Sequence record: NC_061450.1
Direction: 5' to 3' (one strand)
DNA: 64,000 nucleotides
The notes beneath the pieces were generated by a model. It was not told the origin of the DNA. It ran no database searches and saw nothing but the letters and a program-made list of their open reading frames with translations. Of this stretch, positions 23,458-59,555 are shown in pieces. Both the position numbers and the translations under genes were made by a program. Each line of letters begins with the position of its first letter. The stretch's first letter is position 1.

Positions 23458-23510
23458 GCAAAAAGCTGGTCAAAATACACGTTGAAAATGTGGCGAAAGT
23501 TAAGCACTAT
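23458..23510 (+). promoter_or_regulatory. Sigma70-type promoter with conserved upstream box, copy 1
   Basis: GCAAAAAGCTGGTCAAAA-6nt-TTGAAA-17nt-CACTAT. Confidence 0.7.
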
Positions 23511-23571
23511 ATAGACTCACGACGCAGCTTGTGGGCTGTGTCACTAATCAACATACACGAGGCAGCACACA

Positions 23572-23904
23572 ATGACAGAAGAACGCTATGCAGGTCAGAT
23601 CGACGCAGAACAGGTTGAATCAGTAACCGCCCTGATTGAGCGCATTAACCCCCAACTGCCGAAAGGCGTTCAGCTTGTTTTGTTCAGCGCCGACGAAACT
23701 GGCTTAGGCTTCGGCATGTTGATGGTTGTAAAGTTTGACGACAATGGCGAAGAGACTGGCGACTGGGGCTGGCACATCGATCTGCCCACCGAGTCTGGAC
23801 AGTACGCATTCACCTACGCAGGCAACTTCTGCCACGAGAATGAAGGCAAGGTCCCAGCGACCGACGAGGCCCTTGTTCAGAAAATCCGTTCACTTGAATT
23901 TTAA
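23572..23904 (+). CDS. Hypothetical protein
   Basis: GAGG RBS; first gene after promoter. Confidence 0.8.
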   Translation: MTEERYAGQIDAEQVESVTALIERINPQLPKGVQLVLFSADETGLGFGMLMVVKFDDNGEETGDWGWHIDLPTESGQYAFTYAGNFCHENEGKVPATDEALVQKIRSLEF

Positions 23905-23951
23905 TACGTGTGGCCTTGCGGGGCCACATCATCAACTATCGGAGTTTGACC

Positions 23952-24179
23952 ATGACAAAGAAACTGACCAAGCAGGACGTGCGTCCTATCATCGTTGCGT
24001 ATCTCGACAAGATCGAACAGGCGCCTGTGGAGATCAGCGACCGCCAACGTAAGAGCACGCTGTACCATCACGTTGTCGATCTGCGTAACAGTATGCTGGC
24101 TGATTGGTATTCGCCTGGCCAAGCACTTCGTTATCTCAAGCAAATGCAACGCAAGAATCAAGATCTGGTTAAAATCTGA
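23952..24179 (+). CDS. Hypothetical protein
   Basis: GGAG RBS, ATG 23952. Confidence 0.7.
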   Translation: MTKKLTKQDVRPIIVAYLDKIEQAPVEISDRQRKSTLYHHVVDLRNSMLADWYSPGQALRYLKQMQRKNQDLVKI

Positions 24180-24188
24180 GGAAACATC

Positions 24189-24908
24189 ATGCCATCTATC
24201 AATCAAAGTAAAGTCGCACGTCCCGCTGTCTCCGACGAGCGTGTGTTCGCCATAGAGAGTGTCAGTGACCTGTGTCGCGAACTCAAATCAAATCGTGCAC
24301 CTCGAGGCAAAGCGAAACTACGCAACGAACGCTGGGACGAGGCGAAACAGCTCCAGTCTGTTGTGAGTCACTTGATCATTTTGAGCCTCGGTAATCCTGA
24401 CTCGACATACAACGGTGATTACCCAGACACTGTAGGTAAAGCCCTGCAGGATGCTGAACGCAAGTCTTATGAACTGATCGACGACTGTATTGAGGAGGGC
24501 CTGTTGCCATTCCCGTACAAGAACGCGATGAAAGACCCGGACGCTGTTGTCGTCAAACCAAACACAGGCGGATATATAGCTCCACCTCGTAAGTCTTCTG
24601 TGGCTCCCATCACACACAAGAAGGGCGATCCCGTTCCTGAGAAGCTCAAGCTAAACAGTGAAACGCGTGCTGACCTGAAAGCATTCTGCGACGGCCAGAT
24701 ATCAATGCATGAACTCACAGAGAACCTGCAGGAAGAGCATGACTGTGATATTGTGCGTGTGCGCATTGCTACGCTGGAAGACAAGAAGACAGGCATCAAG
24801 ATCAAGCCTGACGGTGTTATCGCTTTTGATATTGAACGTACCGTGCGTCATCGCCGCGGTATCAACGGCAACATGATTGCCACTCACGCTGTTACCGTTA
24901 TCGTTTAA
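24189..24908 (+). CDS. Hypothetical protein
   Basis: 239 aa; GAGGA RBS. Confidence 0.8.
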   Translation: MPSINQSKVARPAVSDERVFAIESVSDLCRELKSNRAPRGKAKLRNERWDEAKQLQSVVSHLIILSLGNPDSTYNGDYPDTVGKALQDAERKSYELIDDCIEEGLLPFPYKNAMKDPDAVVVKPNTGGYIAPPRKSSVAPITHKKGDPVPEKLKLNSETRADLKAFCDGQISMHELTENLQEEHDCDIVRVRIATLEDKKTGIKIKPDGVIAFDIERTVRHRRGINGNMIATHAVTVIV

Positions 24909-24917
24909 GGAACTACT

Positions 24918-25520
24918 ATGAAAAAGTTCGGACTGTTTATCGCTGTTATGAATACCGACGTAGCCAACCCTGTTCGTTTGCGTTTGCATCAAATGGCCAT
25001 AGAAAGTGTCACCAAAGTGCATTTGCTTGTGGTCTCTGACAATCAGGAACCACGCCTGTGTTTCGTGGACCGCACCCATGTTTTGATTGAGTACCTGCCT
25101 GACGATATGGCTGATATCACTCTTTCAAACATCGTGTGCCGTGAAGTCGCTCAGCGTCCCAGCGATCATCTGATTCGTGAGACTATCGGCCATCGGGGCA
25201 ACACCTCGATCGAACCCGGCGCATGTTTCTTGCAAAAAGCCCCACCAGCACCACGTTCTATCGATCCTGATACGGACTACACCAAGTTCACTATGGAGTG
25301 CATTTCTTGGGAAGAGACAACCAACCCAGAAGTGTTGCGCTATATCTTCGGCAGTTTCCCTACCGCACTGATGGAAGCCGAGCTTGAGCGTCGCCGTGTT
25401 GAGAACGAACAGGAAGAGCAGCAGGACCAGCATGATGCAGACACTTGGACGCAAGAGCAGGATGAGTATGACGAGCACCAACGTCAGGAACTGGACCGTA
25501 TACGAGGACGTCATAAATGA
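24918..25520 (+). CDS. Hypothetical protein
   Basis: 200 aa; AAGGA RBS. Confidence 0.8.
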   Translation: MKKFGLFIAVMNTDVANPVRLRLHQMAIESVTKVHLLVVSDNQEPRLCFVDRTHVLIEYLPDDMADITLSNIVCREVAQRPSDHLIRETIGHRGNTSIEPGACFLQKAPPAPRSIDPDTDYTKFTMECISWEETTNPEVLRYIFGSFPTALMEAELERRRVENEQEEQQDQHDADTWTQEQDEYDEHQRQELDRIRGRHK

Positions 25521-26068
25521 AAGACAACCTCCTTACGGTGCTGGTACATCAAAGCGCGTGTGACAAGCCCATCACTATTCGTGCATTCTCGCGTGAAATG
25601 TTGAACATTCAATTCATGCGAGTGATCCTTGAATCTGATACCAGACCTCCGCGTGCATTCACTGTCAAAGAGTGCCGCGTAGTTGTTGAGAACTTGCACC
25701 CTATTCTTCCAGACACTGCGGAGTACACATTCCATATCACTAAGATGGAGCCCCGCAAGGAACCAGCCAAATCGACCTTGGCGTTTATGAAGAACAACGG
25801 GCGATACCACACAAGGCATATCGCCAACCCGATTATGATGCATGATAAAGTTGAGTTCACCTATGAGTATGTATCTGTGAAAGAGAATCCCAACAACTGG
25901 GTGCAGCATGAACGCTTTCGAGATTTCACCTGCAAGCAACTCTTGGATGAGATTGAACGCCGTCGATTGGAGTGTTTGTCGCATCGACCCCTGTACGATA
26001 GCAAGTCCACACCCATTACTGACTTGGAATGGGCAGAGTATGACAGGCGCCACACAGAAGAGGAATAA
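25517..26068 (+). CDS. Hypothetical protein
   Basis: 183 aa; GAGGA RBS; short ELERRR-like motif also in previous ORF. Confidence 0.75.
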   Translation: MKDNLLTVLVHQSACDKPITIRAFSREMLNIQFMRVILESDTRPPRAFTVKECRVVVENLHPILPDTAEYTFHITKMEPRKEPAKSTLAFMKNNGRYHTRHIANPIMMHDKVEFTYEYVSVKENPNNWVQHERFRDFTCKQLLDEIERRRLECLSHRPLYDSKSTPITDLEWAEYDRRHTEEE

Positions 26069-26410: not shown

Positions 26411-26463
26411 GCAAATTGCTGGTCAAAATGTGAGTAGCATCGATCAGAACATTCTGATACACT
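26411..26463 (+). promoter_or_regulatory. Promoter with conserved upstream box, copy 2
   Basis: GCAAATTGCTGGTCAAAA-6nt-TAGCAT-17nt(TGA)-TACACT. Confidence 0.75.
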
Positions 26464-26522: not shown

Positions 26523-26744
26523 ATGGCCGTCTTCGCAACAATCGTTATTGCGTTTGTCGTGTTGATTACGTTAATCACAGTTGTCATTTCCATAGGCAAC
26601 CGGACGATTGTAGCCGAGATGGAATATGATTTACAGGAAGCACTGGCAGCCATTGATGCGGCTCGCCGCTTTTACGCACGCCAATCTATGTACCACTTAT
26701 CAGGAAAGGACTATGCAAATCAAAAAATGGGTGTCACAAAATAA
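26523..26744 (+). CDS. Small membrane protein
   Basis: N-terminal hydrophobic helix VFATIVIAFVVLITLITVVISI. Confidence 0.7.
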   Translation: MAVFATIVIAFVVLITLITVVISIGNRTIVAEMEYDLQEALAAIDAARRFYARQSMYHLSGKDYANQKMGVTK

Positions 26745-33733: not shown

Positions 33734-34576
33734 ATGCTAAACAAAATCTCATTCGGCGCGGCTCTTCCTTACATGGAAATACGCCACGACAAAAATCCCA
33801 AGCGCAGCCTCGTGCTTACCAACAAGTCGTTTGAGTTCGAGCCTGGTCTGAACATGCTGGTGGGCGCTAACGGCAGCGGTAAGTCAACTCTGCTTGAAGC
33901 CATCGCAAAGCGCTTCCTGTGCTTTAACTTCGGTACGCCAAACCTCGATAAAGAAACGTTTGGCTATATGTCTGAACTGTGGGAAAAAGATGAGGAGTGG
34001 TCGTGGCGGGATGAGAAGTTCCTGCCTTATGTCGATGTTGTGGCTGAACCTATCCCGTACACAATGTACGCCAGCCCTGAGTTCACCCCGATGGGGCAGC
34101 CCAATCGTGCCTATGCTATGTGCTATGGCTTGGGCAAGATCGCCACTGAATACTACGACAAGGTAGATAGCCATTCGAGCGGTCAGGGCATGAGCAACGT
34201 ACTTGCCTCCATGTTTGAAATTCTACGTGGTGCTGAACGTCCCATTGGCCGCAGACAGGTAGAAAAGCATGAATGGCGTGATGAACGTGACAGTGGTAAA
34301 AAGCAAGTCAACTGGCTGGACCAAAACATCTTACCCAAGTCTGATGCGCCAGTCACGTTGTTGCTGGACGAGCCTGAACGTGCTCTTGACCTGAATGCGC
34401 AACTCAAGTTCTGGGCAGACCTGACAGAGTTTAGCAAACAGCCCAACGTCCAGATCATTATCGCAACCCACAGCATCATTCCAATGTTTATGCCTGATAT
34501 CAAAGTCAACTATGTTGAAATGACCGATGGCTATGCAGACAGCTTGACACAAGGCGTCAGAAAACTCAGCAAATAG
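33734..34576 (+). CDS. Stand-alone ABC/SMC-type ATPase
   Basis: Walker A GANGSGKST, signature-like HSSGQ, Walker B LLLDEPE, H-loop IATH; no TM domain. Confidence 0.85.
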   Translation: MLNKISFGAALPYMEIRHDKNPKRSLVLTNKSFEFEPGLNMLVGANGSGKSTLLEAIAKRFLCFNFGTPNLDKETFGYMSELWEKDEEWSWRDEKFLPYVDVVAEPIPYTMYASPEFTPMGQPNRAYAMCYGLGKIATEYYDKVDSHSSGQGMSNVLASMFEILRGAERPIGRRQVEKHEWRDERDSGKKQVNWLDQNILPKSDAPVTLLLDEPERALDLNAQLKFWADLTEFSKQPNVQIIIATHSIIPMFMPDIKVNYVEMTDGYADSLTQGVRKLSK

Positions 34577-34621
34577 CTGGTCAAAACAACTGCTGCAAAA
34601 AGGAGTCTCGTGTGATATACT
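34569..34621 (+). promoter_or_regulatory. Promoter with conserved upstream box, copy 3
   Basis: GCAAATAGCTGGTCAAAA-6nt-CTGCAA-17nt(TGA)-TATACT. Confidence 0.75.
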
Positions 34622-41583: not shown

Positions 41584-42561
41584 ATGAAACTCGGTTTCGC
41601 CTGCAAGTATATCGACTACCGTGGCAAGCAGCCATTTGCAAGCCGCTCAGTTAATTTCAGCCAACTGTCAAAGCTCAGCCCTGAACAGCAAATCGACAAG
41701 CTGGTTGAGATTGCAGGCCATAATGTAGCTGCCTTGTTCAGCATGATTGAACACGTAGGCAAGCAGCGTCCTGACTTGCGCATGTTCCGTATCACAAGCG
41801 ATTTGTTTCCGTTGTTTACGCATCCCAAGGTGCATCACCTGTATGAGCGACACGTCAACCATCTAGTCAGCCTAGTACTGGCCATGTGTGGTAAAGTTGC
41901 TCGTCGGCATGGTGTGCGTCTTAGCTTTCATCCTGGTCAATTCACGGTGCTGGCCAGCGACAAGCCTCATGTTGTAGACAACGCAATCGAGGAGCTTGAG
42001 TACCACACATGGTGTGCCGTACAGATGGGTTATGGTCAGAAGTTCCAAGATTTCAAGATCAACATTCATCTGTCAGGTGCTGGTGGCGCAACTGAGTTTC
42101 GTCGTAATTTTAAACGTCTCAGCCCAGAGTGTCGTCGTATGCTCACGGTTGAGAATGATGAAGTCTCCTCCAGTGTTGAACAGTGTTTGACGCTGGCGGA
42201 TATCTGTCCTGTTGTTCTCGACATTCATCATCATTGGGTTATGACCAACGAATACATCATGCCCAGTGATGCCCGAGTTCAGCAGGTTATTGACTCATGG
42301 CGTGGCGTGCGTCCTACCATGCACTACTCTGTGTCGCGTCCTGAGTTCGTTCCTAGTGACCGTCTTCCTGATCAGAATAAGCTGTCCGTTGCCCGTGGTA
42401 AATTGCGTGCTCACTCTGACTACTATCACAACGATGCAGTCAACGAGTGGGCGTTAACGTTTGACCAGTTCGATATTATGTGTGAGTCAAAGGCAAAGAA
42501 TCTAGCCCGTACGCTGCTATTGCTAGACAAGCCTTATTCGACAAATCACTGGTCAAAATAG
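41584..42561 (+). CDS. uvsE: UV-damage endonuclease (UvsE/UVDE)
   Basis: MKLGFACK, FRITSDLFP, RLSFHPGQFTVLAS, LTVENDE, VLDIHHHW, AHSDY, DIMCESKAK. Confidence 0.93.
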   Translation: MKLGFACKYIDYRGKQPFASRSVNFSQLSKLSPEQQIDKLVEIAGHNVAALFSMIEHVGKQRPDLRMFRITSDLFPLFTHPKVHHLYERHVNHLVSLVLAMCGKVARRHGVRLSFHPGQFTVLASDKPHVVDNAIEELEYHTWCAVQMGYGQKFQDFKINIHLSGAGGATEFRRNFKRLSPECRRMLTVENDEVSSSVEQCLTLADICPVVLDIHHHWVMTNEYIMPSDARVQQVIDSWRGVRPTMHYSVSRPEFVPSDRLPDQNKLSVARGKLRAHSDYYHNDAVNEWALTFDQFDIMCESKAKNLARTLLLLDKPYSTNHWSK

Positions 42562-42593
42562 CGCTAGATGCTGTGGGCGGGACATGCTATAAT
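42541..42593 (+). promoter_or_regulatory. Promoter with conserved upstream box, copy 4 (overlaps uvsE 3' end)
   Basis: ACAAATCACTGGTCAAAA-6nt-TAGATG-17nt(TGC)-TATAAT. Confidence 0.75.
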
Positions 42594-46987: not shown

Positions 46988-47040
46988 GCAAATCTGTGGA
47001 CGAAACACAGCTAGTAGCAAACGCCAGTCTGTGATATACT
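46988..47040 (+). promoter_or_regulatory. Promoter with conserved upstream box, copy 5
   Basis: GCAAATCTGTGGACGAAA-6nt-TAGTAG-17nt(TGA)-TATACT. Confidence 0.7.
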
Positions 47041-47995: not shown

Positions 47996-48003
47996 ACATT
48001 CTT

Positions 48004-48029
48004 GGGCAGCCTTGCGGGTCTGCCCTTTT
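48004..48029 (+). terminator. Intrinsic terminator
   Basis: GGGCAG...CTGCCC-TTTT. Confidence 0.7.
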
Positions 48030-48051
48030 CAACACTAGGGAAAAACAAACT

Positions 48052-49088: not shown

Positions 49089-49098
49089 GGGCAGTCTA

Positions 49099-49359
49099 AT
49101 GGTTATAACCAACCGCGATAAATTCAGAAAGCTGTTTGCCGATGACAACACGCATTACGTTAGTCTTATGACAGCCGACGGTCAGGGCCAAGATGTTGGC
49201 TACATGAACTCACCACTCGAAGTACAGGCTGCCGTGCTTAACTTTGCCTACTCTCGTGGTGTGAATCGAGTCACAGCGACTTTTGGTCGCAACGTTATGG
49301 CGGACCCAGATGTGATCCTGGTGTTCCATGTTAGCTACGACGTTAAGATTGAGGATTGA
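49099..49359 (+). CDS. Hypothetical protein
   Basis: GAGGG RBS, ATG 49099. Confidence 0.65.
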   Translation: MVITNRDKFRKLFADDNTHYVSLMTADGQGQDVGYMNSPLEVQAAVLNFAYSRGVNRVTATFGRNVMADPDVILVFHVSYDVKIED

Positions 49360-49361
49360 TC

Positions 49362-49550
49362 ATGAGTATCTATAAAATCCTTATCATTACCAGCCGAGAG
49401 AACAACAACGTTGGTGGTGTTGGTGTTAGTCAAATTGTTGTTGACTACCCGAACAAGTCCGCTGCTGATGAAGCGGCACGAAACCTTAAATTCGCTCAGG
49501 ATGAAAACAAAACTGGGCCTCATACTGTCACAATGATCAAACTGTATTAA
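49362..49550 (+). CDS. Small hypothetical protein
   Basis: GAGGA RBS. Confidence 0.6.
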   Translation: MSIYKILIITSRENNNVGGVGVSQIVVDYPNKSAADEAARNLKFAQDENKTGPHTVTMIKLY

Positions 49551-49559
49551 GGAACAAAG

Positions 49560-50063
49560 ATGCAGATTCAAATCCAACCAACTGGCAACATCGAAAACTT
49601 CATCGCACCGAAGCGCGGCTCAGCCCATGCTGCTGGTCTGGATATCTTTGCTCAGGAAGATATGCTTATCAGCGAAGAGACCCATCTGTTTGACCTGGGT
49701 TTCAAAGCAGCACTGATCTGTCCTGAAGGTACCAACTATGTTGCTGTGCTGGTACCACGCTCAGGCTCAGGCGCCAAGTACAACGTGCAACTGTCTAACA
49801 CTCTGGGTGTTATCGACAGCGACTATCGCGGTGAGTGGAAAGCAGCTATCCACCTCGGTGGTAAAGGTACAGAGAAAAAATCTCTGGAGCACTGGAACGG
49901 CGAACGCTATGTCAACACTCTTGAGTTCAAACGTGGTGAAGCTATCTGCCAGATGATCTTTATCGAAGTACCTCTGGTCGATGTGCTGGTCAGCGCAGAC
50001 GAACTGCCTGAGACTGGCCGTGGTGATGGTGGCTTTGGTTCTACCGACAAGCCACGCGTTTAA
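49560..50063 (+). CDS. dut: dUTPase (trimeric)
   Basis: Motifs GSAHAAGLDI, VPRSG, GVIDSDYRGE, ICQM, RGDGGFGST. Confidence 0.95.
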   Translation: MQIQIQPTGNIENFIAPKRGSAHAAGLDIFAQEDMLISEETHLFDLGFKAALICPEGTNYVAVLVPRSGSGAKYNVQLSNTLGVIDSDYRGEWKAAIHLGGKGTEKKSLEHWNGERYVNTLEFKRGEAICQMIFIEVPLVDVLVSADELPETGRGDGGFGSTDKPRV

Positions 50064-50125
50064 GCATTATCTGATACCGTGCGTCTTGCGGGGCGCACGT
50101 ACTCCGTTACTAATTTCACCAATCG

Positions 50126-50134
50126 GTGTAAATA
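50126..50134 (+). promoter_or_regulatory. GTGTAAATA motif upstream of operon containing transglycosylase
   Basis: Recurrent gene-junction motif. Confidence 0.4.
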
Positions 50135-50153
50135 TGAGTATTGAGACGAGACT

Positions 50154-50465
50154 ATGCCAAAAAAGTATTTACTGCCGAGAGAACGTCCAAGCCCACTTGT
50201 GAATCTCAGGGCCTATTTGCTGCATTGTGCCAAGAAGCCCAATGACCACCGTGAGGTGTTTAAGCATTACTACCAAAAGAGTCAGCGCCTGCTACACAAA
50301 CAGCGCTTCTTCCTAGGTAACTTGTTTGGTCACAAGTTAAAGACCAAGAAAGGCGCAGTTCGTTATACAGTGATTTGGATTGATCCATATAACTTCGACT
50401 GCTTAGTATTAGACCACGTGGAGAAGCTGCCCAAATTCAAAAACCTTTACGGCCTGATTCTTTAG
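50154..50465 (+). CDS. Basic hypothetical protein
   Basis: 103-aa ORF. Confidence 0.65.
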   Translation: MPKKYLLPRERPSPLVNLRAYLLHCAKKPNDHREVFKHYYQKSQRLLHKQRFFLGNLFGHKLKTKKGAVRYTVIWIDPYNFDCLVLDHVEKLPKFKNLYGLIL

Positions 50466-50505
50466 ACAGGTCCTAGCGCCGATTTCACTAGGAGACACTT
50501 CTTCA

Positions 50506-51177
50506 ATGGTAACTATCATCAACAATCGCACCGACGAGGTAATAAGACGCCTGAACGTCACCATCTGGACACTAGCTGCTATGCTGTTCTGTTTCTACAG
50601 CGTTGTGGTCAGCTATCAGGCAAACGCAAGTCTTTCGACTGAACCCAACAACAATATCTCCCTACAAGACTCGGTATCATTGGACCCTGCCAACCGAGTT
50701 GCATTACAGGTGTTAGAAAGACAGGAGCGACAGCGAGAAGCTAAACGCGCCTTAGCCGCATCACCAAGTCACAAGCGGCTCAATGCTATTTATTCACATT
50801 TACCGCGGCCCAAAGACCTTGGCCTTGAATTTGATCGCGCTGCCAAGAAGTACAACGTAAGCGCAAGATTGCTGCTGTCAATGTGTGTCGCAGAGTCTCA
50901 TCTAGGCGTTAGGAAACGCAACAGTAGTGGGGCAACAGGCATTTGTCAGATCATTCCGTCTCAACACGGAACAACGGCCCGAGCCATGTACGATTATCGC
51001 AAGAACATCGACTTGGCAGCCAAAATACTCAGTGACTACTCAAAGCAGTGTGGGGGTCAGTGGTGTGCAGTGCAAGCCTACAATGTGGGAATCACAGCAT
51101 ACAAGAAAGGCGTAAGAGCAAGAGGCTACTTAGCTACGGTTAAGCAGGAATACAACAAACAAATCAGGTCCATCTGA
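50506..51177 (+). CDS. Lytic transglycosylase (SLT domain) with N-terminal membrane anchor
   Basis: VAES catalytic Glu, GATGICQI, AYNVG; hydrophobic helix aa ~17-36; TAGGAG RBS. Confidence 0.85.
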   Translation: MVTIINNRTDEVIRRLNVTIWTLAAMLFCFYSVVVSYQANASLSTEPNNNISLQDSVSLDPANRVALQVLERQERQREAKRALAASPSHKRLNAIYSHLPRPKDLGLEFDRAAKKYNVSARLLLSMCVAESHLGVRKRNSSGATGICQIIPSQHGTTARAMYDYRKNIDLAAKILSDYSKQCGGQWCAVQAYNVGITAYKKGVRARGYLATVKQEYNKQIRSI

Positions 51178-51187
51178 GGAGCAACGA

Positions 51188-51823
51188 ATGAAAATCAATT
51201 TAGAACAACTCTATTTGTTACAGTGTGAAGTCCTGCGTCCATTTTCACCAACTCAGGAATTTGCGTTACTCAATCTCGTGGTCGATAACGTTAGCGAAGC
51301 CGAGCTGGAAGAGTTTGGTGCTGATGTTGTTCAGGCTTTCCCGCACATGCAACGTCTGTACTCAGGCTTTATCAATGCCAGCCAGAACATCCCTAACATC
51401 ATGCCTTTCGCCGTGCCTGTCATGGACAGTGAAAGCGCATTGCAAGATGTTCTTGCCGACACCGAGACTGGACTTAACTTGAGTCCTGCATTGATTGGCA
51501 TTCTTACTCGGGCCTGTAGTCGTGTTCCTGTTGCCGAGCCTCACGTTGATGAACTCAACTTTCCTGTTGAGCACGCGCCTGCACTGACACCTGAGATCAT
51601 TGCTCAGTTGGCATTGTCTGCTATTCGTTATGGCTTGGCACCCATCGTTGTTCGTCCCACCAGAGAGCAACGCAACAACCGTGCTAACTGGTCGCTGAAT
51701 TGCTCTAAGCTGTTTGGCACAAAGTTCGTTGAAGAAAATCCACTATCGCCTACTCAGCGTCTTGAGTATCGCGTTTGTGGTCGCAGCACTCTTGAGATTG
51801 CGCGTCTGCAATCTGTAAACTAA
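51188..51823 (+). CDS. Hypothetical protein
   Basis: GAGGAG RBS. Confidence 0.8.
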   Translation: MKINLEQLYLLQCEVLRPFSPTQEFALLNLVVDNVSEAELEEFGADVVQAFPHMQRLYSGFINASQNIPNIMPFAVPVMDSESALQDVLADTETGLNLSPALIGILTRACSRVPVAEPHVDELNFPVEHAPALTPEIIAQLALSAIRYGLAPIVVRPTREQRNNRANWSLNCSKLFGTKFVEENPLSPTQRLEYRVCGRSTLEIARLQSVN

Positions 51824-51834
51824 GCATGTCCATT

Positions 51835-51861
51835 GGGAGACTCTTCGGGGTCTCCCTTTTT
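51835..51861 (+). terminator. Intrinsic terminator (UUCG hairpin)
   Basis: GGGAGACTC-TTCG-GGGTCTCCC-TTTTT. Confidence 0.85.
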
Positions 51862-51882
51862 ACTTTTCACAGGAAAAACGAT

Positions 51883-52650
51883 ATGAATATTCAAGGCATG
51901 AACTTCTTCCAGCTCCAGCAAAAGATCGATGAAGTATTCGACCACGCTATCATGCATCTTGGCTTGGAGGAGATGTGGGAGTACGTTGTCAAGAACAACA
52001 AAAGTGGTAGCCACTATAACTATCACTCAACTCGCCACATGAAAGAAATGGCAACCATCGCCTACTGGTTGTTAAATCGCAGCTACTATCAACAGGCATT
52101 CCAAAGTCCCGACGCTATCTGGGCTTACGATCAATGCAAGGCAATGATGGCTGCCTGTCTGATTCACGACATGAACCACAGTCTGGGCCGCAAAGACGAC
52201 GATTACAATATCACTCAGGCAATTGATGCACTGATCGCCATGATGCAACAGCACCCTTACGCCTTGACCTTCCTCAGCGTGGACAGTGTGCAGATTGCAG
52301 AAGTGGAACGCAACATCCGTATCACGCGCTTCCCGTACTCAGACGACATGCAACCAAACACTATCTACCAGAAGTGCATTCGTGATGCGGACATCCTGTA
52401 TTCAATGCAGGACTCTGCGGCTAAGGCTGTGGTAGATAACCTGCGCCTTGAAATGGGCATTCGCTTTGACAAGTATCGTACCTGCACTCGTCAGGAGTTT
52501 ATTGCAGACCGTATGCCGTTTATCAAGACCTGCAAGATGTTCACTCAAGCGGCGCAGGACGTTATGCGCCAGCAGCTTGAGTTCGGTGCGCATGAAGTTC
52601 ACTTACTCTCGTATGCGGCTGATGCCGACGCTACTGATAACAGCAAATAA
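51883..52650 (+). CDS. HD-domain metal-dependent phosphohydrolase
   Basis: YHSTRH, LIHDMNH, IRDAD motifs. Confidence 0.8.
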   Translation: MNIQGMNFFQLQQKIDEVFDHAIMHLGLEEMWEYVVKNNKSGSHYNYHSTRHMKEMATIAYWLLNRSYYQQAFQSPDAIWAYDQCKAMMAACLIHDMNHSLGRKDDDYNITQAIDALIAMMQQHPYALTFLSVDSVQIAEVERNIRITRFPYSDDMQPNTIYQKCIRDADILYSMQDSAAKAVVDNLRLEMGIRFDKYRTCTRQEFIADRMPFIKTCKMFTQAAQDVMRQQLEFGAHEVHLLSYAADADATDNSK

Positions 52651-52695
52651 CTGGCTATAATAGGCGTAGAATACGAGGTCTGCGCCTGATATAAT
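52643..52695 (+). promoter_or_regulatory. Promoter with conserved upstream box, copy 6 (degenerate box)
   Basis: GCAAATAACTGGCTATAA-6nt-TAGAAT-17nt(TGA)-TATAAT. Confidence 0.65.
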
Positions 52696-52724
52696 AAAAG
52701 CTCAACACAAAGAGGGCTTGCATA

Positions 52725-52925
52725 GTGGACATTCTTCTCACGTTGAGCAAGATGGGATTCTATGTGCTGGGCATGATAACGCTTGGTGCTCATCTTCTCA
52801 CAATCGTTTATCGCACGATCAAGATTCATGATTGGCGTGCTAAACGAAAGGCTAAAAAGCCAAAGTCACAACTTGATATTCTTCGCAAGCGTCTGGCTCG
52901 CCAGCGCAAATCAATTCTCCGTTAG
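52725..52925 (+). CDS. Small membrane protein with basic C-terminus
   Basis: One TM helix then K/R-rich tail. Confidence 0.65.
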   Translation: MDILLTLSKMGFYVLGMITLGAHLLTIVYRTIKIHDWRAKRKAKKPKSQLDILRKRLARQRKSILR

Positions 52926-52933
52926 AGGTAAGT

Positions 52934-53500
52934 ATGAAAAAAGAACTCCGTGAAAATATGCGTAACGTGGCAGCCAACTATGAAGGCCGTGAAGAAACGC
53001 GCCGTCAAACAACGCTGATCGCCGAGACTATGTTTGGTGCCAGCCTGTTTCATTCTGGTCCAACCAGCCCCTTGTCCATGCGCAAGGATATCGTTAGCGT
53101 CCACGAAATCATCTTGATTCGTACCGAGCCGACCTATGCACGCCTGAATAAAGAACTGAACAAGTTGGGCTTCCGTACTGATTACTTGTCCGCCGATGTT
53201 AAAGGCTATGCGCAGTATGCCACCATGTACCTTCAGGAGATGGAACGTCACGTTCAGTGGGCAGATACAATCTCAGCCCTGAACGAGGCAGATGTTCTCG
53301 AATGCGCATTCATTCCTGTGTATCTCGATCCACTCGGTGCGCGTGTGCTGGTATACACTCAAACCAGCTCCGTACACAATGCGGATGAAGTTGCGGAACT
53401 GCGTGACCTGTTCTTGGCAAAGAAAATGCCAGCGTATTTCAAATCCCACAATATGATCGTTGAAGCTGTTAACCCAATCTATGAGCGCAAGGAGAAGTAA
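52934..53500 (+). CDS. Hypothetical protein
   Basis: GAGGT RBS. Confidence 0.8.
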   Translation: MKKELRENMRNVAANYEGREETRRQTTLIAETMFGASLFHSGPTSPLSMRKDIVSVHEIILIRTEPTYARLNKELNKLGFRTDYLSADVKGYAQYATMYLQEMERHVQWADTISALNEADVLECAFIPVYLDPLGARVLVYTQTSSVHNADEVAELRDLFLAKKMPAYFKSHNMIVEAVNPIYERKEK

Positions 53501-53501
53501 C

Positions 53502-53945
53502 ATGAGCAAGCAATTAAAGTTTGATGAACGGCGTAAGGCAGTTGTTCAACTCAGTGCATGGTTCACGATGACTGAGGAAAATCTCAAGGCGTTTGGTGAT
53601 TGCGCTCACGAACACAGATACAGTAATGCCCGTGAGCATCAGGCACATCTGGGCATGTTGCAAATGAATGTCCACCGTACAATGCACAGTGAAGGCATGA
53701 CGGACGAAAGTGGCCTGTGCGCTTGTCTAACTTTTACCGAAATCACCAGCACAGGCACCCGTGCAGAAATCCTGCTGTTCTCTGATATGACGGATATGGG
53801 TGGCTTCCGCGCTGACTACTGCCACATGCAGGACTTGCTGCGCCGTGTTGCTGATGAGAACGGATTTAAATACTCCTCACTCTGGACATTCGTCGCTCCT
53901 GAGTACCGTAAAGACACAGAGTTCATGGAGTTGCTAGATGCCTAA
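53502..53945 (+). CDS. Hypothetical protein
   Basis: AAGGAG RBS, ATG 53502. Confidence 0.75.
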   Translation: MSKQLKFDERRKAVVQLSAWFTMTEENLKAFGDCAHEHRYSNAREHQAHLGMLQMNVHRTMHSEGMTDESGLCACLTFTEITSTGTRAEILLFSDMTDMGGFRADYCHMQDLLRRVADENGFKYSSLWTFVAPEYRKDTEFMELLDA

Positions 53946-54276
53946 AGTATTGCACATTGGTCAGTTCGGTATTCATCTAACGCAGCCTGAGCCAACCGCT
54001 GATCGCGTTAACGATATGCGCCTGAACAGCAAGCGTGTTGGTGAGCTGGTGGGATTTCTCAATGAGCGTATTGTGGAGAAGACGTTTGGAGGAACATCCT
54101 CTCCAACTGTCACATGGCGGGAAGTCATTGGCGTACAGAGTTTTATCTACGGTGAACTCTATGTTTACGCCGAAGGCTTGCCTGAAAATGCCTGTGCTGC
54201 TGCTATCTCCGCAGTCCAAAGCGTGTGCAATCAATTCCAGTGCACCATGAAGTTCGAGCAGTTACACAAGTTTTAA
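53938..54276 (+). CDS. Hypothetical protein
   Basis: GGAG RBS. Confidence 0.75.
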   Translation: MPKVLHIGQFGIHLTQPEPTADRVNDMRLNSKRVGELVGFLNERIVEKTFGGTSSPTVTWREVIGVQSFIYGELYVYAEGLPENACAAAISAVQSVCNQFQCTMKFEQLHKF

Positions 54277-54302
54277 TCTTTTCTTCTCAGACAGGAGGTT
54301 GT

Positions 54303-54746
54303 ATGAATGACCAGATGGCTAGTGCTGTTGTGGAGATACGTGCGGTTACCCGCGAACCGGAATCAATCGACAGTGTGACGGACATGCACCACGTTGTTAT
54401 CTCTATGCATGAACGCATCGTTGAAAGCTCTTACGTGGTTCGCTGTACTTTGTCTGGCGTGTCCAGCAAGGGTCACCAGATAGCTTGCATCGTTAACGTC
54501 CGACCAATCGGCATCAAGCCTGAGGCTGAATTGCAGTATATGTTGCGTCGTGTTTGTCGTCATTTGAAACGCATGGCCAATGAAAGAAATCTCGGCTTCA
54601 CCGTCAGTCATTCAACTTATGATCTCTTTGTCGCACAGGAACACAAAAATGTCAAAGAAAGAAAATCGCCAAAAGCTCCACGCGCTAATCGTCGCGAACA
54701 TTCCACTCACACAACATTTGCTGCGGGAGTCCTTGCAGGAATCTGA
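54303..54746 (+). CDS. Hypothetical protein
   Basis: AGGAGGT RBS; 3' end overlaps next gene by 98 nt. Confidence 0.65.
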   Translation: MNDQMASAVVEIRAVTREPESIDSVTDMHHVVISMHERIVESSYVVRCTLSGVSSKGHQIACIVNVRPIGIKPEAELQYMLRRVCRHLKRMANERNLGFTVSHSTYDLFVAQEHKNVKERKSPKAPRANRREHSTHTTFAAGVLAGI

Positions 54747-55098
54747 GCAGGATGATGTAGCCGACATTGCACTCACCTTAGATCAGGGCCGTGCAGTGTT
54801 TCGCTTGACTGGTGAGCCAGGCATGATCGCTAACTCGTTTGAAGTCAAACTCTCCTGGAGCGAGAAGCAGGCCTATCGAATGAAGGTCAAGCCTCACAAG
54901 TACCTGCGTGAGAAAGTCAAAGAGACCGTCAAGCTGGCCAGTGACCGCACGTGGGGTGAGCATGATGACTCGTATGGCTTTAAGCAGGACAAGAAGCTGT
55001 ATAGTCGCGTCAGGGAAGAGCTGGTGGACAGTATGCTGCGTGCTTTTGTTAGTGACCGTGTCCGTACATTGTTTAAGGAGTTTAATGATGGAATTTAA
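54649..55098 (+). CDS. Hypothetical protein
   Basis: CAGGA RBS, ATG 54649. Confidence 0.7.
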   Translation: MSKKENRQKLHALIVANIPLTQHLLRESLQESEQDDVADIALTLDQGRAVFRLTGEPGMIANSFEVKLSWSEKQAYRMKVKPHKYLREKVKETVKLASDRTWGEHDDSYGFKQDKKLYSRVREELVDSMLRAFVSDRVRTLFKEFNDGI

Positions 55099-55366
55099 AG
55101 ACCTGCCGTTGAAAGTTCAAGTCATTGTCATGATGATGCACAGCATCGGTGTTTTGGAATCACTGTGTGAGTCGCAGAATCTGACTCAAAAGGATTTTGA
55201 AAACGTGGTTGCCGAAACTTACGCCGCCATAGGTGTTGAGGCCGACTATATGAAGCAACTCATTGATGGCCTGACTGCGGAAGAAGAACGGCTGATGAAT
55301 GACTACCTCGATGATCACAACATGGAAGTTGAAGAAGACAACAGCAACGAACCAAAGGTACATTAA
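55088..55366 (+). CDS. Hypothetical protein
   Basis: TAAGGAG RBS. Confidence 0.7.
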   Translation: MEFKDLPLKVQVIVMMMHSIGVLESLCESQNLTQKDFENVVAETYAAIGVEADYMKQLIDGLTAEEERLMNDYLDDHNMEVEEDNSNEPKVH

Positions 55367-56349
55367 TGAAACATGTTTCTCTTCCCAAGCACGACGATAC
55401 CACACGCGCTCTGTTGATTGATGGCCCAGTTTACGAAGGCTGGCTGATCTACGTTCCTTGCCGTTTGTCCAATGACAGAGAGCTGCAAATTCCCGTTGCA
55501 TCCCGTGAGGGGTATGGTATTCACACTCGCAAGCAACCTATTCTCTTAATACCCGCACACGCCAAACCAGAACTAGCCATTGCTACTTTGCAGATACGTC
55601 GCATAGTGCATACCAAGAACTTGATGGAAGATACACCTCACTGCCATATCGATGATGCCGTTGCGATTGACCTGACAAGCTACCGCGCAGGCTTGGGAGA
55701 AGCAAGCACGCGCACAGGACGATTCGCATATGTCTGGCCTCATGGGCGTGAGAAAAGTTTAGCGACAGGACGCGCTATTCATGAACTGCGAATCGGAGCA
55801 GAATCCATTCACCATCCTGAGCTTGATGCAATTGAGCAGGCAGATATGGACGCTGCCCAGGCGGAACTTGATTTGCACAAGAGCTGGAAGAAGTTGTATT
55901 GTGACCACATCACAGGGCGCCTGACTATCGTGCTGCCTGGGATCGACACTGTTACAACCTATGCAGGCCAAGACTTGGATGAAATGCCCTTGGTATACTG
56001 CAAGTATATGCACACCGGTGCGGGTCGTGGACTAAACTCCGATGCCTTTAGTACCGACTATGCCGCCAAGCTGGCTCCAGTACGCCACGAGCTTATTCAG
56101 TTTATTGAAATGCTGAGTGGCATGTCCGCGATGGTAAGCAATGATATCGAGTTTACCTATGACGGCGCCACTCCTTCGATCACGTTCAAGCACAAGGACA
56201 AACGTCTTGACCTGCGCGTTAACGATCTGCCTATGATTGGCCGCTTCCTTGTAGTTGACCCAAGCAAGGAAGATTTCGATAGCATGTTGACGACGTATGA
56301 AACCCTGACTCTGGCTATTAACTCAATCACCACGAGGTTGACACAATGA
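55366..56349 (+). CDS. Hypothetical protein
   Basis: 327 aa; TAATG coupling. Confidence 0.75.
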   Translation: MKHVSLPKHDDTTRALLIDGPVYEGWLIYVPCRLSNDRELQIPVASREGYGIHTRKQPILLIPAHAKPELAIATLQIRRIVHTKNLMEDTPHCHIDDAVAIDLTSYRAGLGEASTRTGRFAYVWPHGREKSLATGRAIHELRIGAESIHHPELDAIEQADMDAAQAELDLHKSWKKLYCDHITGRLTIVLPGIDTVTTYAGQDLDEMPLVYCKYMHTGAGRGLNSDAFSTDYAAKLAPVRHELIQFIEMLSGMSAMVSNDIEFTYDGATPSITFKHKDKRLDLRVNDLPMIGRFLVVDPSKEDFDSMLTTYETLTLAINSITTRLTQ

Positions 56350-56732
56350 AAACTTATGACCCACGTTCAAAGCTGATTCGTACCAATAAGTCTGGACAAG
56401 CGCTGGTGGACGTTGCAGTGGGTGAAGACACCCAGACGGTTGCTTTTACCGTACCCAACGTTGTTATCGTTGCTGCTGTTGGTGAGTCGAGTAGTTGGTC
56501 CGGTCAGAAGTTCGATGGCTATGCTTACCTGCCAAATGCCGAAGCACTTAACGCATTTCGTGCGCATCTTGAAAAGACCAAGACGTATGAGGAGTATTCG
56601 TTTATCGTTGACGTAAGCCTCAAAGCTATCACGTCAGAGGGGATTGAGGTCATGCGTAGCAAGCTCACAGAATGCCCAGATCGTCCATGGCTGTGGGTAA
56701 ACACTGATTTCTCATGCAAGCTGTGGGACTAA
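56346..56732 (+). CDS. Hypothetical protein
   Basis: GAGGT RBS, ATGA overlap. Confidence 0.75.
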   Translation: MKTYDPRSKLIRTNKSGQALVDVAVGEDTQTVAFTVPNVVIVAAVGESSSWSGQKFDGYAYLPNAEALNAFRAHLEKTKTYEEYSFIVDVSLKAITSEGIEVMRSKLTECPDRPWLWVNTDFSCKLWD

Positions 56733-56737
56733 AAGCT

Positions 56738-56790
56738 GCAAATTGCTGGTCAAAATAGCTGTTGAACAAAAAGCTGTGTTTTGATAGAAT
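56738..56790 (+). promoter_or_regulatory. Promoter with conserved upstream box, copy 7
   Basis: GCAAATTGCTGGTCAAAA-6nt-TTGAAC-17nt(TGA)-TAGAAT. Confidence 0.8.
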
Positions 56791-56821
56791 AGTAGTGGGA
56801 GGGCATTCAGCCTTCTCACTA

Positions 56822-56844
56822 TACAACGTCTGAGGAGACGCACA
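56822..56844 (+). repeat. 23-bp RBS cassette, copy 1
   Basis: TACAACGTCTGAGGAGACGCACA, identical at 57308-57330. Confidence 0.9.
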
Positions 56845-57273
56845 GTGACTCGAATGAATGAACGCCAGAAACACGAAGCACGTAATTCAGACCCATACGA
56901 TTGGCACAACCTGGAAATTGATATCACCAAGCTGTTGTTGCTTGCCGAAGATAAAAGAAAGTCTGTGGTATTTGCACCGATGAACTTATTTCCCAAGTTC
57001 ACCGAGTACAACAATCTAGGCTACGTGTTGCACCAGCTCAATGATTTTCGTCTGAGTTCTTTAATGACTGAAAATGAGCGAATCAAAGGTCACTGGATTG
57101 CGACTGACGGTGATCATCTGGACTACGTTATTTTTCTGCGTCTGCCAGATGCAAACACCGAAGTAGATGTGTTTGACCCGCGTGACAGAGAGTTGGTCAA
57201 GGGGCGTATGCTTTCTCCTACCTTCCTGTGTATGCCTGAGAACTTCGATCTGTTTAAAACAGAAAGCCGCTAA
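56845..57273 (+). CDS. Hypothetical protein
   Basis: GAGGAG RBS, GTG start. Confidence 0.75.
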   Translation: MTRMNERQKHEARNSDPYDWHNLEIDITKLLLLAEDKRKSVVFAPMNLFPKFTEYNNLGYVLHQLNDFRLSSLMTENERIKGHWIATDGDHLDYVIFLRLPDANTEVDVFDPRDRELVKGRMLSPTFLCMPENFDLFKTESR

Positions 57274-57307
57274 ACATCCGATGCCTGCTTATGCGGGCAT
57301 TATCAAG

Positions 57308-57330
57308 TACAACGTCTGAGGAGACGCACA
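57308..57330 (+). repeat. 23-bp RBS cassette, copy 2
   Basis: Identical to 56822-56844. Confidence 0.9.
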
Positions 57331-57840
57331 ATGAGTGAGACTATGAACCACCAGTTTGATGACGAGTCGCAAGTTGCAATCAACACCGCTGTTCAGGAGG
57401 TGCGCAACATTCTTGCCGAGACACCTGTGGCTCCAATTGATATCGCAATTGCAGGTGCTCGTGTTTATCTGACAGTTGCCGAGCATCTTGGTGGTCACCC
57501 GCTTGATGTGCGTTTCGTACATGACAACAAAATTGTTAGCATGGCAATGCGTGTTACTACCGTGCCTAGTGACCAAGAGTTCGAAGCCAACGGCATTAAC
57601 ATCGAACATCAAAAGATGTTGACGATGGCTATCATGGATGGATTCGACAAGGCTGTTGAACTGGAAGTCATCAGCGGTTATGAGCAGGGCGCGATGTTTG
57701 TTGCTGCCTTGCGTGTGTTGTATATGGGATTGGTTGAAGACCCAAGTGTTAAGGAACTTAGATTCCGACACAGCCAGAAAAACAACGTGATCAACATTTT
57801 AAATCCTGCCAGAGGAAACTCCGAAAATGAGAACGGTTAA
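57331..57840 (+). CDS. Hypothetical protein
   Basis: GAGGAG RBS. Confidence 0.8.
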   Translation: MSETMNHQFDDESQVAINTAVQEVRNILAETPVAPIDIAIAGARVYLTVAEHLGGHPLDVRFVHDNKIVSMAMRVTTVPSDQEFEANGINIEHQKMLTMAIMDGFDKAVELEVISGYEQGAMFVAALRVLYMGLVEDPSVKELRFRHSQKNNVINILNPARGNSENENG

Positions 57841-58015
57841 CGATATTATCAAGGTGCTGAAAGAGCAGCGAGTAGTTACCATCCCACAGAGTCAGAGCAG
57901 CATTGTTCCTGACCTGTGCTTCACACTTGACGTGTGGTGCATTCCTCACCGTCGTCGTGATGTAGACAGCTTACAACATGGCCGTCAGGTGCGTATTGAA
58001 CTGCGGAATAGTTAA
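57827..58015 (+). CDS. Small hypothetical protein
   Basis: GAGGA RBS, 62 aa. Confidence 0.55.
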   Translation: MRTVNDIIKVLKEQRVVTIPQSQSSIVPDLCFTLDVWCIPHRRRDVDSLQHGRQVRIELRNS

Positions 58016-58102
58016 GCAGCGTTTGGCCCAGCAATTTGGGCCATTCTTTTAAGTGTTGTTCAAGACAGCATTTAGACGAATATTAACCTGCTATCAGAAT
58101 CT

Positions 58103-58155
58103 ACAAATACGTGGACAAAAGACGCGTTGTATCACGTTACTGATTGTGAGATAAT
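58103..58155 (+). promoter_or_regulatory. Promoter with conserved upstream box, copy 8
   Basis: ACAAATACGTGGACAAAA-6nt-TTGTAT-17nt(TGA)-GATAAT. Confidence 0.7.
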
Positions 58156-58161
58156 AGACGT

Positions 58162-58374
58162 GCAGTATGAGACGTGAGGAATCGTACTGTAATTGACTGA
58201 CAACTCTTTGGGCGTACAATCGGCCATCAACATTCCTGTGATTGTACGCTCCTTTTTCAAGTGGCTTTGAAGTTTAAGGCTACTTGCGAAAGGGTTCGAT
58301 ACCCTTTGAGCGCTGCCGGATTTACGCGGTTTTCACCGACAGTGCTCTCATGCTAAACCGCAAAGGAAATAACC
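58162..58374 (+). ncRNA. Candidate structured leader / ncRNA with T-loop hairpin and pseudoknot
   Basis: Five hairpins read by eye; TTCGATA loop on AAAGGG/CCCTTT stem; GCGGTTT loop complementary to AAACCGC next to RBS. Confidence 0.55.
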
Positions 58375-58947
58375 ATGCCAGAATTACGCAAGCCTCGTCC
58401 AGCAGATAAATTCTCTCAGGCACGCGCTGCAAAGAACTCTCCTGAAAGGCAAGAAGCCGCTGCGCAAAAGAAAATCTCACGCGGGCCTAAAGCATCTGGT
58501 CCTCGTCGCAATGCTATGCAGTTAGAATCGCCGACTAAGATTCGCGATGAAGAACGTGTGTTGAATCTTGTGCTGTTTATTCTACGCGGCTGGAAACAAG
58601 CAAAGGCTGATAGTGAAGCCAGCGCCTCACAGGGCATTATCAAAGTGAGTCGCAAGGAAATTGAAATCGCATTGCGTGATCTTAAAAACACGCGCTTCAC
58701 TAAAATCCCGACGTTGATTAATGACGTGCTGGTCTATAACGAAATCGTTGCCGAGTTCGGACAGTGGGTGTATGTCGAGCACGACCATCCAGACTGGATG
58801 TTCATCTTAACGCCTCCGAGTGAGACGTTGGTAACGCGCTGCCGCATTCGTCGCAACAAAGAGACAGGCGACCTGACGCAACTTATTGCAAGTGAAGCGT
58901 TGCTGCCTGTAGAGGACGAATATGAAGAAGACGAGGAGAAAGAATAA
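58375..58947 (+). CDS. Hypothetical protein (basic N-terminus, acidic C-terminus)
   Basis: AAGGA RBS. Confidence 0.8.
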   Translation: MPELRKPRPADKFSQARAAKNSPERQEAAAQKKISRGPKASGPRRNAMQLESPTKIRDEERVLNLVLFILRGWKQAKADSEASASQGIIKVSRKEIEIALRDLKNTRFTKIPTLINDVLVYNEIVAEFGQWVYVEHDHPDWMFILTPPSETLVTRCRIRRNKETGDLTQLIASEALLPVEDEYEEDEEKE

Positions 58948-59237
58948 TGACTATTCAAACTCCTGCTGTTGTTGCTGAGTCGCTGGTGCATAACGCCCAA
59001 AATTATTTTGGGATCAAAGGTAAGTCCTGTACGCGATTTTCAACGACAGAGAAAAACATTCTGTTGCTGAGTGGTCATAATCGCTATCTTCCTGACGACT
59101 ATGTTGACCAGCTCAAGCGTTCTTTTCACGATATTGATTGGCTGATGTTTAAAGTTGGCACTGACGACTATGCTTTTTTAAGTCTCAGTCAAACCAAAAA
59201 CTGGTCGCGTCTGTCAATGAAATATCTCGATAAATAA
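58947..59237 (+). CDS. Hypothetical protein
   Basis: TAATG coupling. Confidence 0.7.
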   Translation: MTIQTPAVVAESLVHNAQNYFGIKGKSCTRFSTTEKNILLLSGHNRYLPDDYVDQLKRSFHDIDWLMFKVGTDDYAFLSLSQTKNWSRLSMKYLDK

Positions 59238-59249
59238 TTCCTGACAAAT

Positions 59250-59474
59250 AAGAGGGCATCGCATCAGGTGCCACGATTATAAACTGCAAGCGATTTGCTG
59301 GCCCCTGTGCTTACCCACATCCCCCAAGATACAGAGTTGCATTGGGTGCCGGCTCTTTTTTGAAGTGTTCTGCGAGAGAGCGCTTCACAAAGGTATAGTC
59401 CATGATTGTTTCACTTAGACTGCTTATCGTCTCTATGTCCGATGATACGCGTGGCGATAAGCAGTCACTTTTTT
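59250..59474 (+). ncRNA. Candidate structured non-coding RNA block with two U-tract-terminated stems
   Basis: No ORF; stems 59250-60/59345-57 (+U6), 59362-71/59377-86, 59418-31/59453-66 (+U6). Confidence 0.45.
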
Positions 59475-59502
59475 ACAGAGCATCAACCAGTCTGTGTTCT
59501 GT

Positions 59503-59555
59503 GCAAAAGCGTGGTCAAAATAGCTGTTGTGTTTGACCAGTCTTTATCGTACCAT
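59503..59555 (+). promoter_or_regulatory. Promoter with conserved upstream box, copy 9
   Basis: GCAAAAGCGTGGTCAAAA-6nt-TTGTGT-17nt-TACCAT. Confidence 0.75.

Follow-up and report, generated by a model that had tools for sequence, protein, structure and literature searches.

An 18-base sequence box, RCAAAWNNSTGGWCRAAA, marks a discrete class of promoters that is specific to one family of jumbo bacteriophages. The box was followed up in a 64,000-nucleotide stretch of sequence record NC_061450.1 (the window), which matches, with 100% identity, positions 186001-250000 of the genome of Erwinia phage pEa_SNUABM_5 (MW366843, 267,169 bp), a jumbo phage in the genus Rivsvirus that infects the fire-blight bacterium E. 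amylovora. The reading that we favour, tentatively and with slightly less than even confidence, is that the box is a composite upstream element in which the site of a phage-specified factor lies beside an A-tract for the RNA polymerase alpha subunit's C-terminal domain (alphaCTD), on extended -10 promoters of the host polymerase. Upstream promoter elements and activator sites on phage promoters are a known kind; what is new here is the sequence of the box, its composite geometry, its conservation across the family and its lineage-specific core. No earlier description of these promoters was found in the searchable literature, the coverage of which does not include the Y3 genome paper.

The box and its fixed distance to the -10 element

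Scanning of the whole pEa_SNUABM_5 genome on both strands returned 10 exact matches to the consensus on the + strand and none on the - strand, and with one degenerate site these make up 11 box sites. Eight of the exact matches lie in the window, all on the + strand, where 1.23 matches with up to two mismatches would be expected by chance and none of 100 shuffles reached eight; the ninth site in the window, at 52643, is a variant with three mismatches. The original prediction had listed these nine sites, and each was recovered at its position. The genome adds two more beyond the window, at record positions 257885 and 262805, one preceding the gyrase B operon and the other the gene after topoisomerase IV A, so that the accessory regulon first suggested is not only accessory. 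All 11 sites fall inside record positions 209458-262805, that is, in one 53-kb gene block, and they score 22-35 bits with a position weight matrix (PWM) against at most 16.5 bits for everything else in the genome.

If the -10 hexamer is numbered -12 to -7, the box extends from -59 to -42, which places its G11 at -49, its A16-18 at -44 to -42 and a conserved T outside it at -35. The separation of exactly 29 nt between the box and a -10-like hexamer that had been described for all nine window sites was reproduced in every case, and so was the extended -10 TGn in seven of them. In window coordinates, all on the + strand, the first promoter (23458..23510; box 23458-23475, -10 at 23505-23510) has TTGAAA in the -35 slot and CACTAT as its -10, the weakest of the set and without TGn. 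The second (26411..26463; box 26411-26428) combines TAGCAT with TGa-TACACT, and its box begins 4 nt past the stop codon of the upstream gene. Three boxes lie inside the 3' ends of genes, as previously claimed, namely those of the third promoter in an ABC-ATPase gene (34569..34621; box 34569-34586; CTGCAA, TGa-TATACT), the fourth in uvsE (42541..42593; box 42541-42558; TAGATG, TGc-TATAAT) and the sixth in an HD-type gene (52643..52695; TAGAAT, TGa-TATAAT), where the degenerate box GCAAATAACTGGCTATAA scores 22 bits. A TGGAC core is found in the fifth (46988..47040; box 46988-47005; TAGTAG, TGa-TATACT) and the eighth (58103..58155; box 58103-58120; TTGTAT, TGa-GATAAT). The seventh (56738..56790; box 56738-56755) has TTGAAC and TGa-TAGAAT, and the ninth (59503..59555; box 59503-59520) has TTGTGT and TACCAT without TGn. 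Genome-wide, 4 of the 11 boxes overlap the end of the upstream gene's coding sequence, and start codons follow 30-220 nt downstream of the -10.

When the pEa_SNUABM_5 sites are aligned on the box, information is present only in an A.TC. motif, the box itself, a T.G in the -35 slot and TG.TA..T. The A.TC. extends the conservation about 5 nt upstream of the box, and the spacers between box, -35 slot and -10 are unrelated among sites. A strict -10 test (A2, T6 and at least 4 of 6 consensus positions; background frequency 1.3%) was passed by eight of the nine window sites (binomial p ~8e-15). Across the genome, the 11 sites stand 29 nt from a -10-like hexamer, one of them at 28, and nine carry TGn. 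The -35 hexamers had been called variable and mostly poor; poor they are, but their first base is nearly always T and the third usually G (in the six enterobacterial phages considered below, TTG and TAG occur 18 times each). Judged by these letters, TGn with a TATAAT-like hexamer having A2 and T6, the box sites belong to the extended -10 type of promoter and have poor -35 hexamers. That the box is a signal acting at the RNA level is very unlikely, given its fixed distance to a DNA element.

A sigma-70 scoring scan of both strands returned, as high-scoring intergenic sites co-oriented with genes, only box promoters and one site in the leader of the 58103 promoter, the remaining matches being scattered within genes in both orientations. 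Five box promoters have core scores as low as 6.7-7.7, and at 23458 no hexamer passes the -10 filter; these six weak-core promoters rank under many chance matches. Since several core scores lie below those of random intragenic matches, the box is the distinguishing feature of these promoters. Similarly, a generic promoter scan that demanded a fair -35 found 21 candidates where 21.2 were expected, no excess, and recovered only 56738 among the box promoters.

Conservation and the lineage-specific core

The layout is present in seven phages of different genera, with 63 sites in all. A motif scan of related phages had been suggested alongside the original prediction, and the same layout was found in six relatives. 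Scanning of syntenic regions with the PWM gave it in Yoloswag (13 sites), Dickeya phage AD1 (11), Dickeya phage JA11 (7) and Yersinia phage fHe-Yen9-02 (8), a looser pattern that included a -10 filter gave it in Erwinia phage Y3 (7), and the marine phage NCTB has it as well (6). Every clear match of the PWM scan was on the + strand at the same spacing. Yoloswag emerged from a collection scan with the box pattern, in which the other matches were mostly chance singles. NCTB has a different 5' arm, ACTTTTTTATC.TGGTACAAAA, at 29 nt from TGcTATAAT in all six of its sites. Distant metagenomic contigs that carry uvsE (43-49% identity) had no box.

Over the six enterobacterial phages, a -10-like hexamer stands at exactly 29 nt in 47 of 57 sites (background 1.3%, p ~1e-78), or in 40 of 50 when Y3 is left out; a qualifying hexamer lies at 28-32 nt in 54 of the 57, and TGn is present in 42. 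Besides the 29-nt spacing, all seven phages share a G near -49, AAA over -44 to -42 and a T at -35. The positions of the promoters are conserved as well. For example, the promoter at the uvsE 3' end is orthologous in six of the seven (pEa_SNUABM_5, Yoloswag, AD1, Y3, fHe-Yen9-02 and NCTB), and a promoter pair upstream of a 502-aa gene also occurs in Yoloswag, JA11, Y3, Yen9-02 and NCTB. Depending on the phage, the last base of the uvsE stop codon falls at box position 9, 16, 21 or 27, and because this codon moves in this way relative to the box, coding constraint does not account for the conservation.

Within the box, C2, A3, A5, G11 and A17 do not vary at any of the 57 sites of the six enterobacterial phages. 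Positions 4, 7, 9, 10, 12, 13 and 14, on the other hand, differ by lineage (permutation p <= 0.0005) with low entropy within each lineage. The core at positions 10-14 reads TGGWC in Rivsvirus, Yoloswagvirus and Alexandravirus (Alexandraviruses being polymorphic for TGGTC and TGGAC), AGGCT in Y3, TGTCC in the JA11 type, CGGCT in fHe-Yen9-02 and GGTAC in NCTB (TGGTAC at positions 9-14). Phages of the same host differ in their core, namely pEa_SNUABM_5 and Y3 on E. amylovora, and AD1 and JA11 on D. solani MK10. In the orthologous promoter at the uvsE end, the core has been altered in place, each phage having its own lineage's version. These two facts argue against a host protein as the reader of the core, and the pattern fits a reader specified by each phage.

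Uniformity within a genome together with divergence between genomes is also the expected outcome of gene conversion, and the box sites could accordingly be mobile promoter cassettes homogenised by recombination or gene conversion, in which case no reader of the core would be needed. PeSLs are a model for this, being composite terminator and early-promoter motifs that mediate gene shuffling (PMC4122927; PMC2839356). Like PeSLs, the box sites are repeated, putatively early promoter motifs that flank small variable genes, and some have stem-loops. We regard this explanation as highly improbable, as only the box, T.G and -10 are conserved, and conversion tracts would not spare the unrelated spacers; moreover, promoter positions are orthologous across genera. 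Whereas PeSLs are composite terminator-promoter cassettes, box sites overlap coding sequence in the four cases mentioned, and an upstream terminator-like hairpin is present at two of the eight in-window sites judged. A terminator scan of window positions 43001-63000 (five sites) found hairpins upstream of 58103 and 59503 only, and the boxes at 34569, 42541 and 52643, being inside coding sequence, leave no room for an upstream terminator.

Candidate readers of the box

Most jumbo phages are without a polymerase of their own, rely on the host RNA polymerase and often encode sigma homologs (PMC13282480). Among the annotated genes of the whole pEa_SNUABM_5 genome there is no phage RNA polymerase; a gene for a sigma-like factor of 347 aa lies at window positions 11182-12225 on the + strand, with a weak Pfam match to Sigma70_r2 and a PHROG annotated 'RNA polymerase sigma factor', and a PDB sequence search with it gave no match. 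From their -10 elements, the box promoters would be used by the host sigma-70 holoenzyme.

A second promoter class, here called class B, bears on the timing. Its motif, aatCTGTAAATA, was found by k-mer enrichment in intergenic DNA and has copies in both gene blocks of the genome. One block, on the + strand, begins at about 184.6 kb and passes through the origin to end at 44.4 kb; the other, on the - strand, covers 44.4-184.5 kb and contains structural and replication genes. Copies in the window lie at 3825 (-), 5824, 11135, 23033, 23434, 41088, 43807 and 50127; that at 11135 is directly upstream of the sigma-like gene, and two are immediately upstream of box promoters. Exact copies of TGTAAATA are co-oriented with the downstream gene in 37 of 37 cases, the lone - strand primase gene included, and for CTGTAAAT the balance is 42 to 2. 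Start codons stand 24-41 nt downstream, which indicates that the motif acts as a -10-type element. The T4 late promoter motif TATAAATA resembles class B. The class is present in all relatives, NCTB included, and is probably read by the sigma-like factor, which leaves the box class as the one usable by unmodified host polymerase; it is on this ground that box promoters may be considered early.

The sigma-like factor, or a polymerase carrying it, might itself read the 5' arm of the box, and the sites would then be dual or switching promoters. Together with its flank the arm reads aaTCtGCAAAT, essentially one T-to-C change away from the class B consensus aaatCTGTAAATA (aaTCTGTAAAT), class B accompanies the box in all relatives, and two JA11 boxes lie 29 nt upstream of a class-B-like cTGTAAACT core. 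We nevertheless give this explanation little credence. TGCAAAT alone has neither strand bias nor enrichment in the genome (19 on the + strand versus 22 on the -), NCTB keeps class B yet has a T-tract in place of GCAAAT in its 5' arm, and the fixed spacing to a sigma-70-type -10 would be left unexplained.

The register of the box points to alphaCTD as one partner. The proximal alphaCTD subsite has its centre near -43 and the distal one near -53, and an A-run of three or more bases is enough to narrow the minor groove (PMC3326320); in rrnB P1 the adenines at -41 to -43 are critical, and in phage Mu Pm an activator site is paired with a partial UP element (both PMC4390567, the former as cited there). 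The 3' A-run of the box, centred at -43.5, coincides with the proximal subsite, and it is for this reason that a composite element is favoured; the 5' run, centred at -56, is about 3 bp off the distal centre. In the proposed mechanism, the 3' A-run (-45 to -42) would be the docking place of one alphaCTD, and the G/C-containing core around the G at -49, probably with the A/T-rich 5' arm, would be read by a lineage-specified factor. Factor and alphaCTD would jointly recruit or stabilise polymerase at promoters whose -35 keeps only T.G, much as a class I activator does, or Mor at Mu Pm. The original prediction had offered a UP-like element or a phage activator site as alternatives, and both may apply as one element. 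Its claim of a distinct promoter class stands, and the core favours a phage-specified binder over a plain UP element; early timing and activation, as well as a phage-encoded reader, are what we infer from sequence.

Several known systems are comparable. UP elements of the rrnB P1 type (Estrem, Ross and Gourse, cited in PMC4390567 and PMC3326320) resemble the box in lying at about -60 to -40, in having A/T runs, one of them at the proximal subsite, and in that both would offset weak core elements; the box differs in its nearly invariant G/C-containing core, in being far better conserved and in a core that varies by phage lineage within one host. Class I promoters (CRP, lac-type; PMC4132738) likewise have a discrete site upstream of the -35, stringent spacing and room for alphaCTD before sigma region 4, and a conserved sequence at a fixed upstream distance across a regulon is what the seven phages display. 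The box is centred at about -50 to -54, in contrast to -61.5 for CRP, and is asymmetric with no dyad. Mu Pm (PMC4390567) is also a phage promoter with a poor -35 and an activator site next to an alphaCTD A-tract; unlike the box promoters, it has the reverse order, with Mor at -43.5 and alphaCTD upstream near -55, its Mor site is a dyad, and it is a single promoter as opposed to a genome-wide class.

In the proteins scanned, Pfam gave neither a MotA nor an AsiA domain, and no MotA-box arrangement is seen, the conserved element lying at -59 to -42 and the -35 slot keeping only T.G. In T4 middle promoters a MotA box (TGCTTtA-like) at -30 replaces the -35 and works with AsiA, and T4 early promoters have A/T-rich upstream regions without a G/C core, with Alt as a modifier of alpha. 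T4 and pEa_SNUABM_5 are alike in having a host-polymerase class with an extra element at a fixed distance from a sigma-70 -10, plus a class of the T4 late type.

Several points weigh against a phage-made reader. If box promoters are the first to be used, such a factor would be absent at time zero, and either injection or a basal phase would then be needed. Y3 and AD1 each have a minority of boxes with the core type of the other, and together with the TGGTC/TGGAC polymorphism this means that the reader tolerates variation, which weakens the argument from co-evolution. A conserved host component could be the reader of the G at -49, the AAA and the T at -35, which are kept in all seven phages. 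Pfam, PHROGs and NCBIfam scans of about 35 phage proteins (the sigma-like factor, a DksA-like protein, an annotated 'co-activator', an annotated 'repressor' that is ParB-like and about 25 conserved proteins of the box region) gave no DNA-binding candidate for the box, and two AlphaFold models searched with Foldseek had no DNA-binding fold. In the models, a 190-aa protein (window 58375-58947; pLDDT 76) had no significant PDB match (best E 0.3, TM 0.2) and in a viral structure library matched family members only, and a 99-aa protein (window 42642-42941; pLDDT 79) is predicted to form a small alpha/beta fold with no significant match. The searchable literature held no transcription data for this phage family.

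Some of these points favour the strongest rival, which we hold to be rather unlikely: that the box is a sequence-specific UP-type element read by host alphaCTDs alone, or by alphaCTDs after phage modification, as by Alt and ModA in T4. Such an element would work at time zero with no phage protein, and it agrees with the failure to find a candidate in the protein scans and with the positions kept across phages of different hosts. The -59 to -42 location is the UP-element register with A/T runs at both ends, the NCTB box is a T-tract followed by AAAA, and the 3' A-run falls on the proximal subsite. UP elements are A/T-rich and degenerate, though, whereas only the flanks of the box are A/T runs: its core contains G/C and is nearly invariant per genome, G11 is present in 57 of 57 sites, and 10-12 of the 18 box positions are A/T. 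Furthermore, alphaCTD alone would hardly account for a core that differs between phages of one host strain and has changed in place at the uvsE promoter, and the 5' run is displaced from the distal subsite.

A phage repressor would also solve the time-zero problem. The box would be its operator for later shut-off, with initial activity provided by the extended -10 and the A-runs, and a lineage-specific core fits a phage-encoded binder of this type. An inverted copy of the box 3' half, TTTGACCAG, lies at 59527-59535, in the part of the 59503 promoter that separates its -35 slot from its -10 and where polymerase would be blocked, and the Yoloswag ortholog has a similar inverted half-box; AD1 and JA11 do not. 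We think this improbable, since a site at -59 to -42 with strictly fixed spacing is typical of activators and several of the core elements are so weak that they would be poor promoters without help. The composite element is preferred to these alternatives. In its more specific form, a family-specific factor delivered with the DNA or made at once, co-evolving with the box and cooperating with alphaCTD on the A-run, it is held more loosely still.

Other candidate readers and identities were tried and rejected. The 255-aa protein that is the most conserved of the block is lysine/alanine-rich with acidic D/E repeats and not a transcription factor. The motifs of IHF, Fis, DnaA, CRP, the MarA/SoxS marbox, sigma-E and sigma-54 misfit the invariant positions and fail across the core changes between lineages; a sigma-54 promoter, which needs GG at -24 and GC at -12, would on the reverse strand (TGACCAG..ATTTGC) have GA for GG, and the block has no - strand genes. 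The box is not a Chi site, as GCTGGT occurs in five boxes, the octamer in none, and other lineages are without even GCTGGT.

The timing of jumbo-phage gene expression is largely unstudied, and the promoters described here provide a testable map for a group of seven or more genera, several of them in use as biocontrol agents against fire blight and soft rot. The map comprises a box-marked host-type class, a T4-late-like class that is probably the phage sigma's and possibly a third class. If the more specific form of the favoured reading is true, a class-I-like activation module would define the host-polymerase phase of gene expression in 'hairy' jumbo phages (Rivsvirus, Yoloswagvirus, Alexandravirus, Sasquatchvirus, Salmondvirus and relatives). 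The lineage-specific core is a natural specificity swap for finding the reader, and the box could serve as a compact phage-inducible promoter part. A new principle would follow only if the reader proves unusual.

Further motifs, transcript ends and genes of the block

The possible third class is represented by GCTAATTT, which occurs 10 times on the - strand and once on the +, with four copies in intergenic gaps of the - strand block (for example at record positions 73330, 115170, 156630 and 172330); it may be a third promoter class, conceivably late. Among the individual box promoters, the class B motif at 23434 stands 24 nt upstream of box 23458, and a partial second box copy, GCTGGTCAAAG, lies 21 nt upstream of box 26411. 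The terminator-like hairpins upstream of the eighth and ninth promoters are at 58024-58043 and 59451-59468.

In about six of the 11 box promoters the predicted transcript starts with a stable hairpin (z down to -4.8), for example at 47045-47070, 56795-56825 and 59560-59585; that of the fifth promoter is a GCAGC/GCTGC hairpin and that of the seventh is strong (z = -4.8). A tGCAG 6-7 nt past the -10 is common to several of them. These hairpins may be mRNA-stabilising stem-loops.

The eighth promoter has a 220-nt leader downstream. The part at 58262-58374, the leader of the 190-aa gene, is conserved at the nucleotide level in Yoloswag, AD1 and JA11 and contains a T-arm-like hairpin, GGGTTCGATACCC, and a long stem, with compensatory changes in 5 of 17 predicted pairs. 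An Rfam scan of the window, this leader included, gave no matches; the leader may be a cis-regulatory RNA. The same leader region, downstream of box promoter 58103, holds a near-consensus sigma-70 promoter at 58193-58220 (TTGACT, 16 nt, TACAAT), no counterpart of which was seen in the Yoloswag leader sequence.

Also encoded in the box-promoter block, which is annotated without - strand genes, are two annotated GNAT acetyltransferases and a DksA/TraR-type zinc-finger protein with a Pfam match at E = 1e-9 (the three genes are at window positions 26523-26744, 36472-36729 and 41151-41576). All three are plausible candidate modifiers of host RNA polymerase. Outside the window, at record positions 255193-255960, is the gene for the 255-aa protein, in which lysine/alanine-rich segments are joined by very long aspartate/glutamate runs. 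It is 96% identical to Yoloswag's protein, and D/E-repeat codons dominate the strand-asymmetric k-mers in all relatives. The protein may mimic DNA, or it may act as a sink for nucleoid proteins.

Finally, the Chi octamer GCTGGTGG has 121 copies genome-wide (63 on the + strand and 58 on the -) and ranks first of 62,301 octamers; random expectation is about 8 copies, and a third-order Markov model predicts about 18. Its occurrence in both orientations and in several reading frames suggests selection at the DNA level, perhaps for protection from RecBCD.

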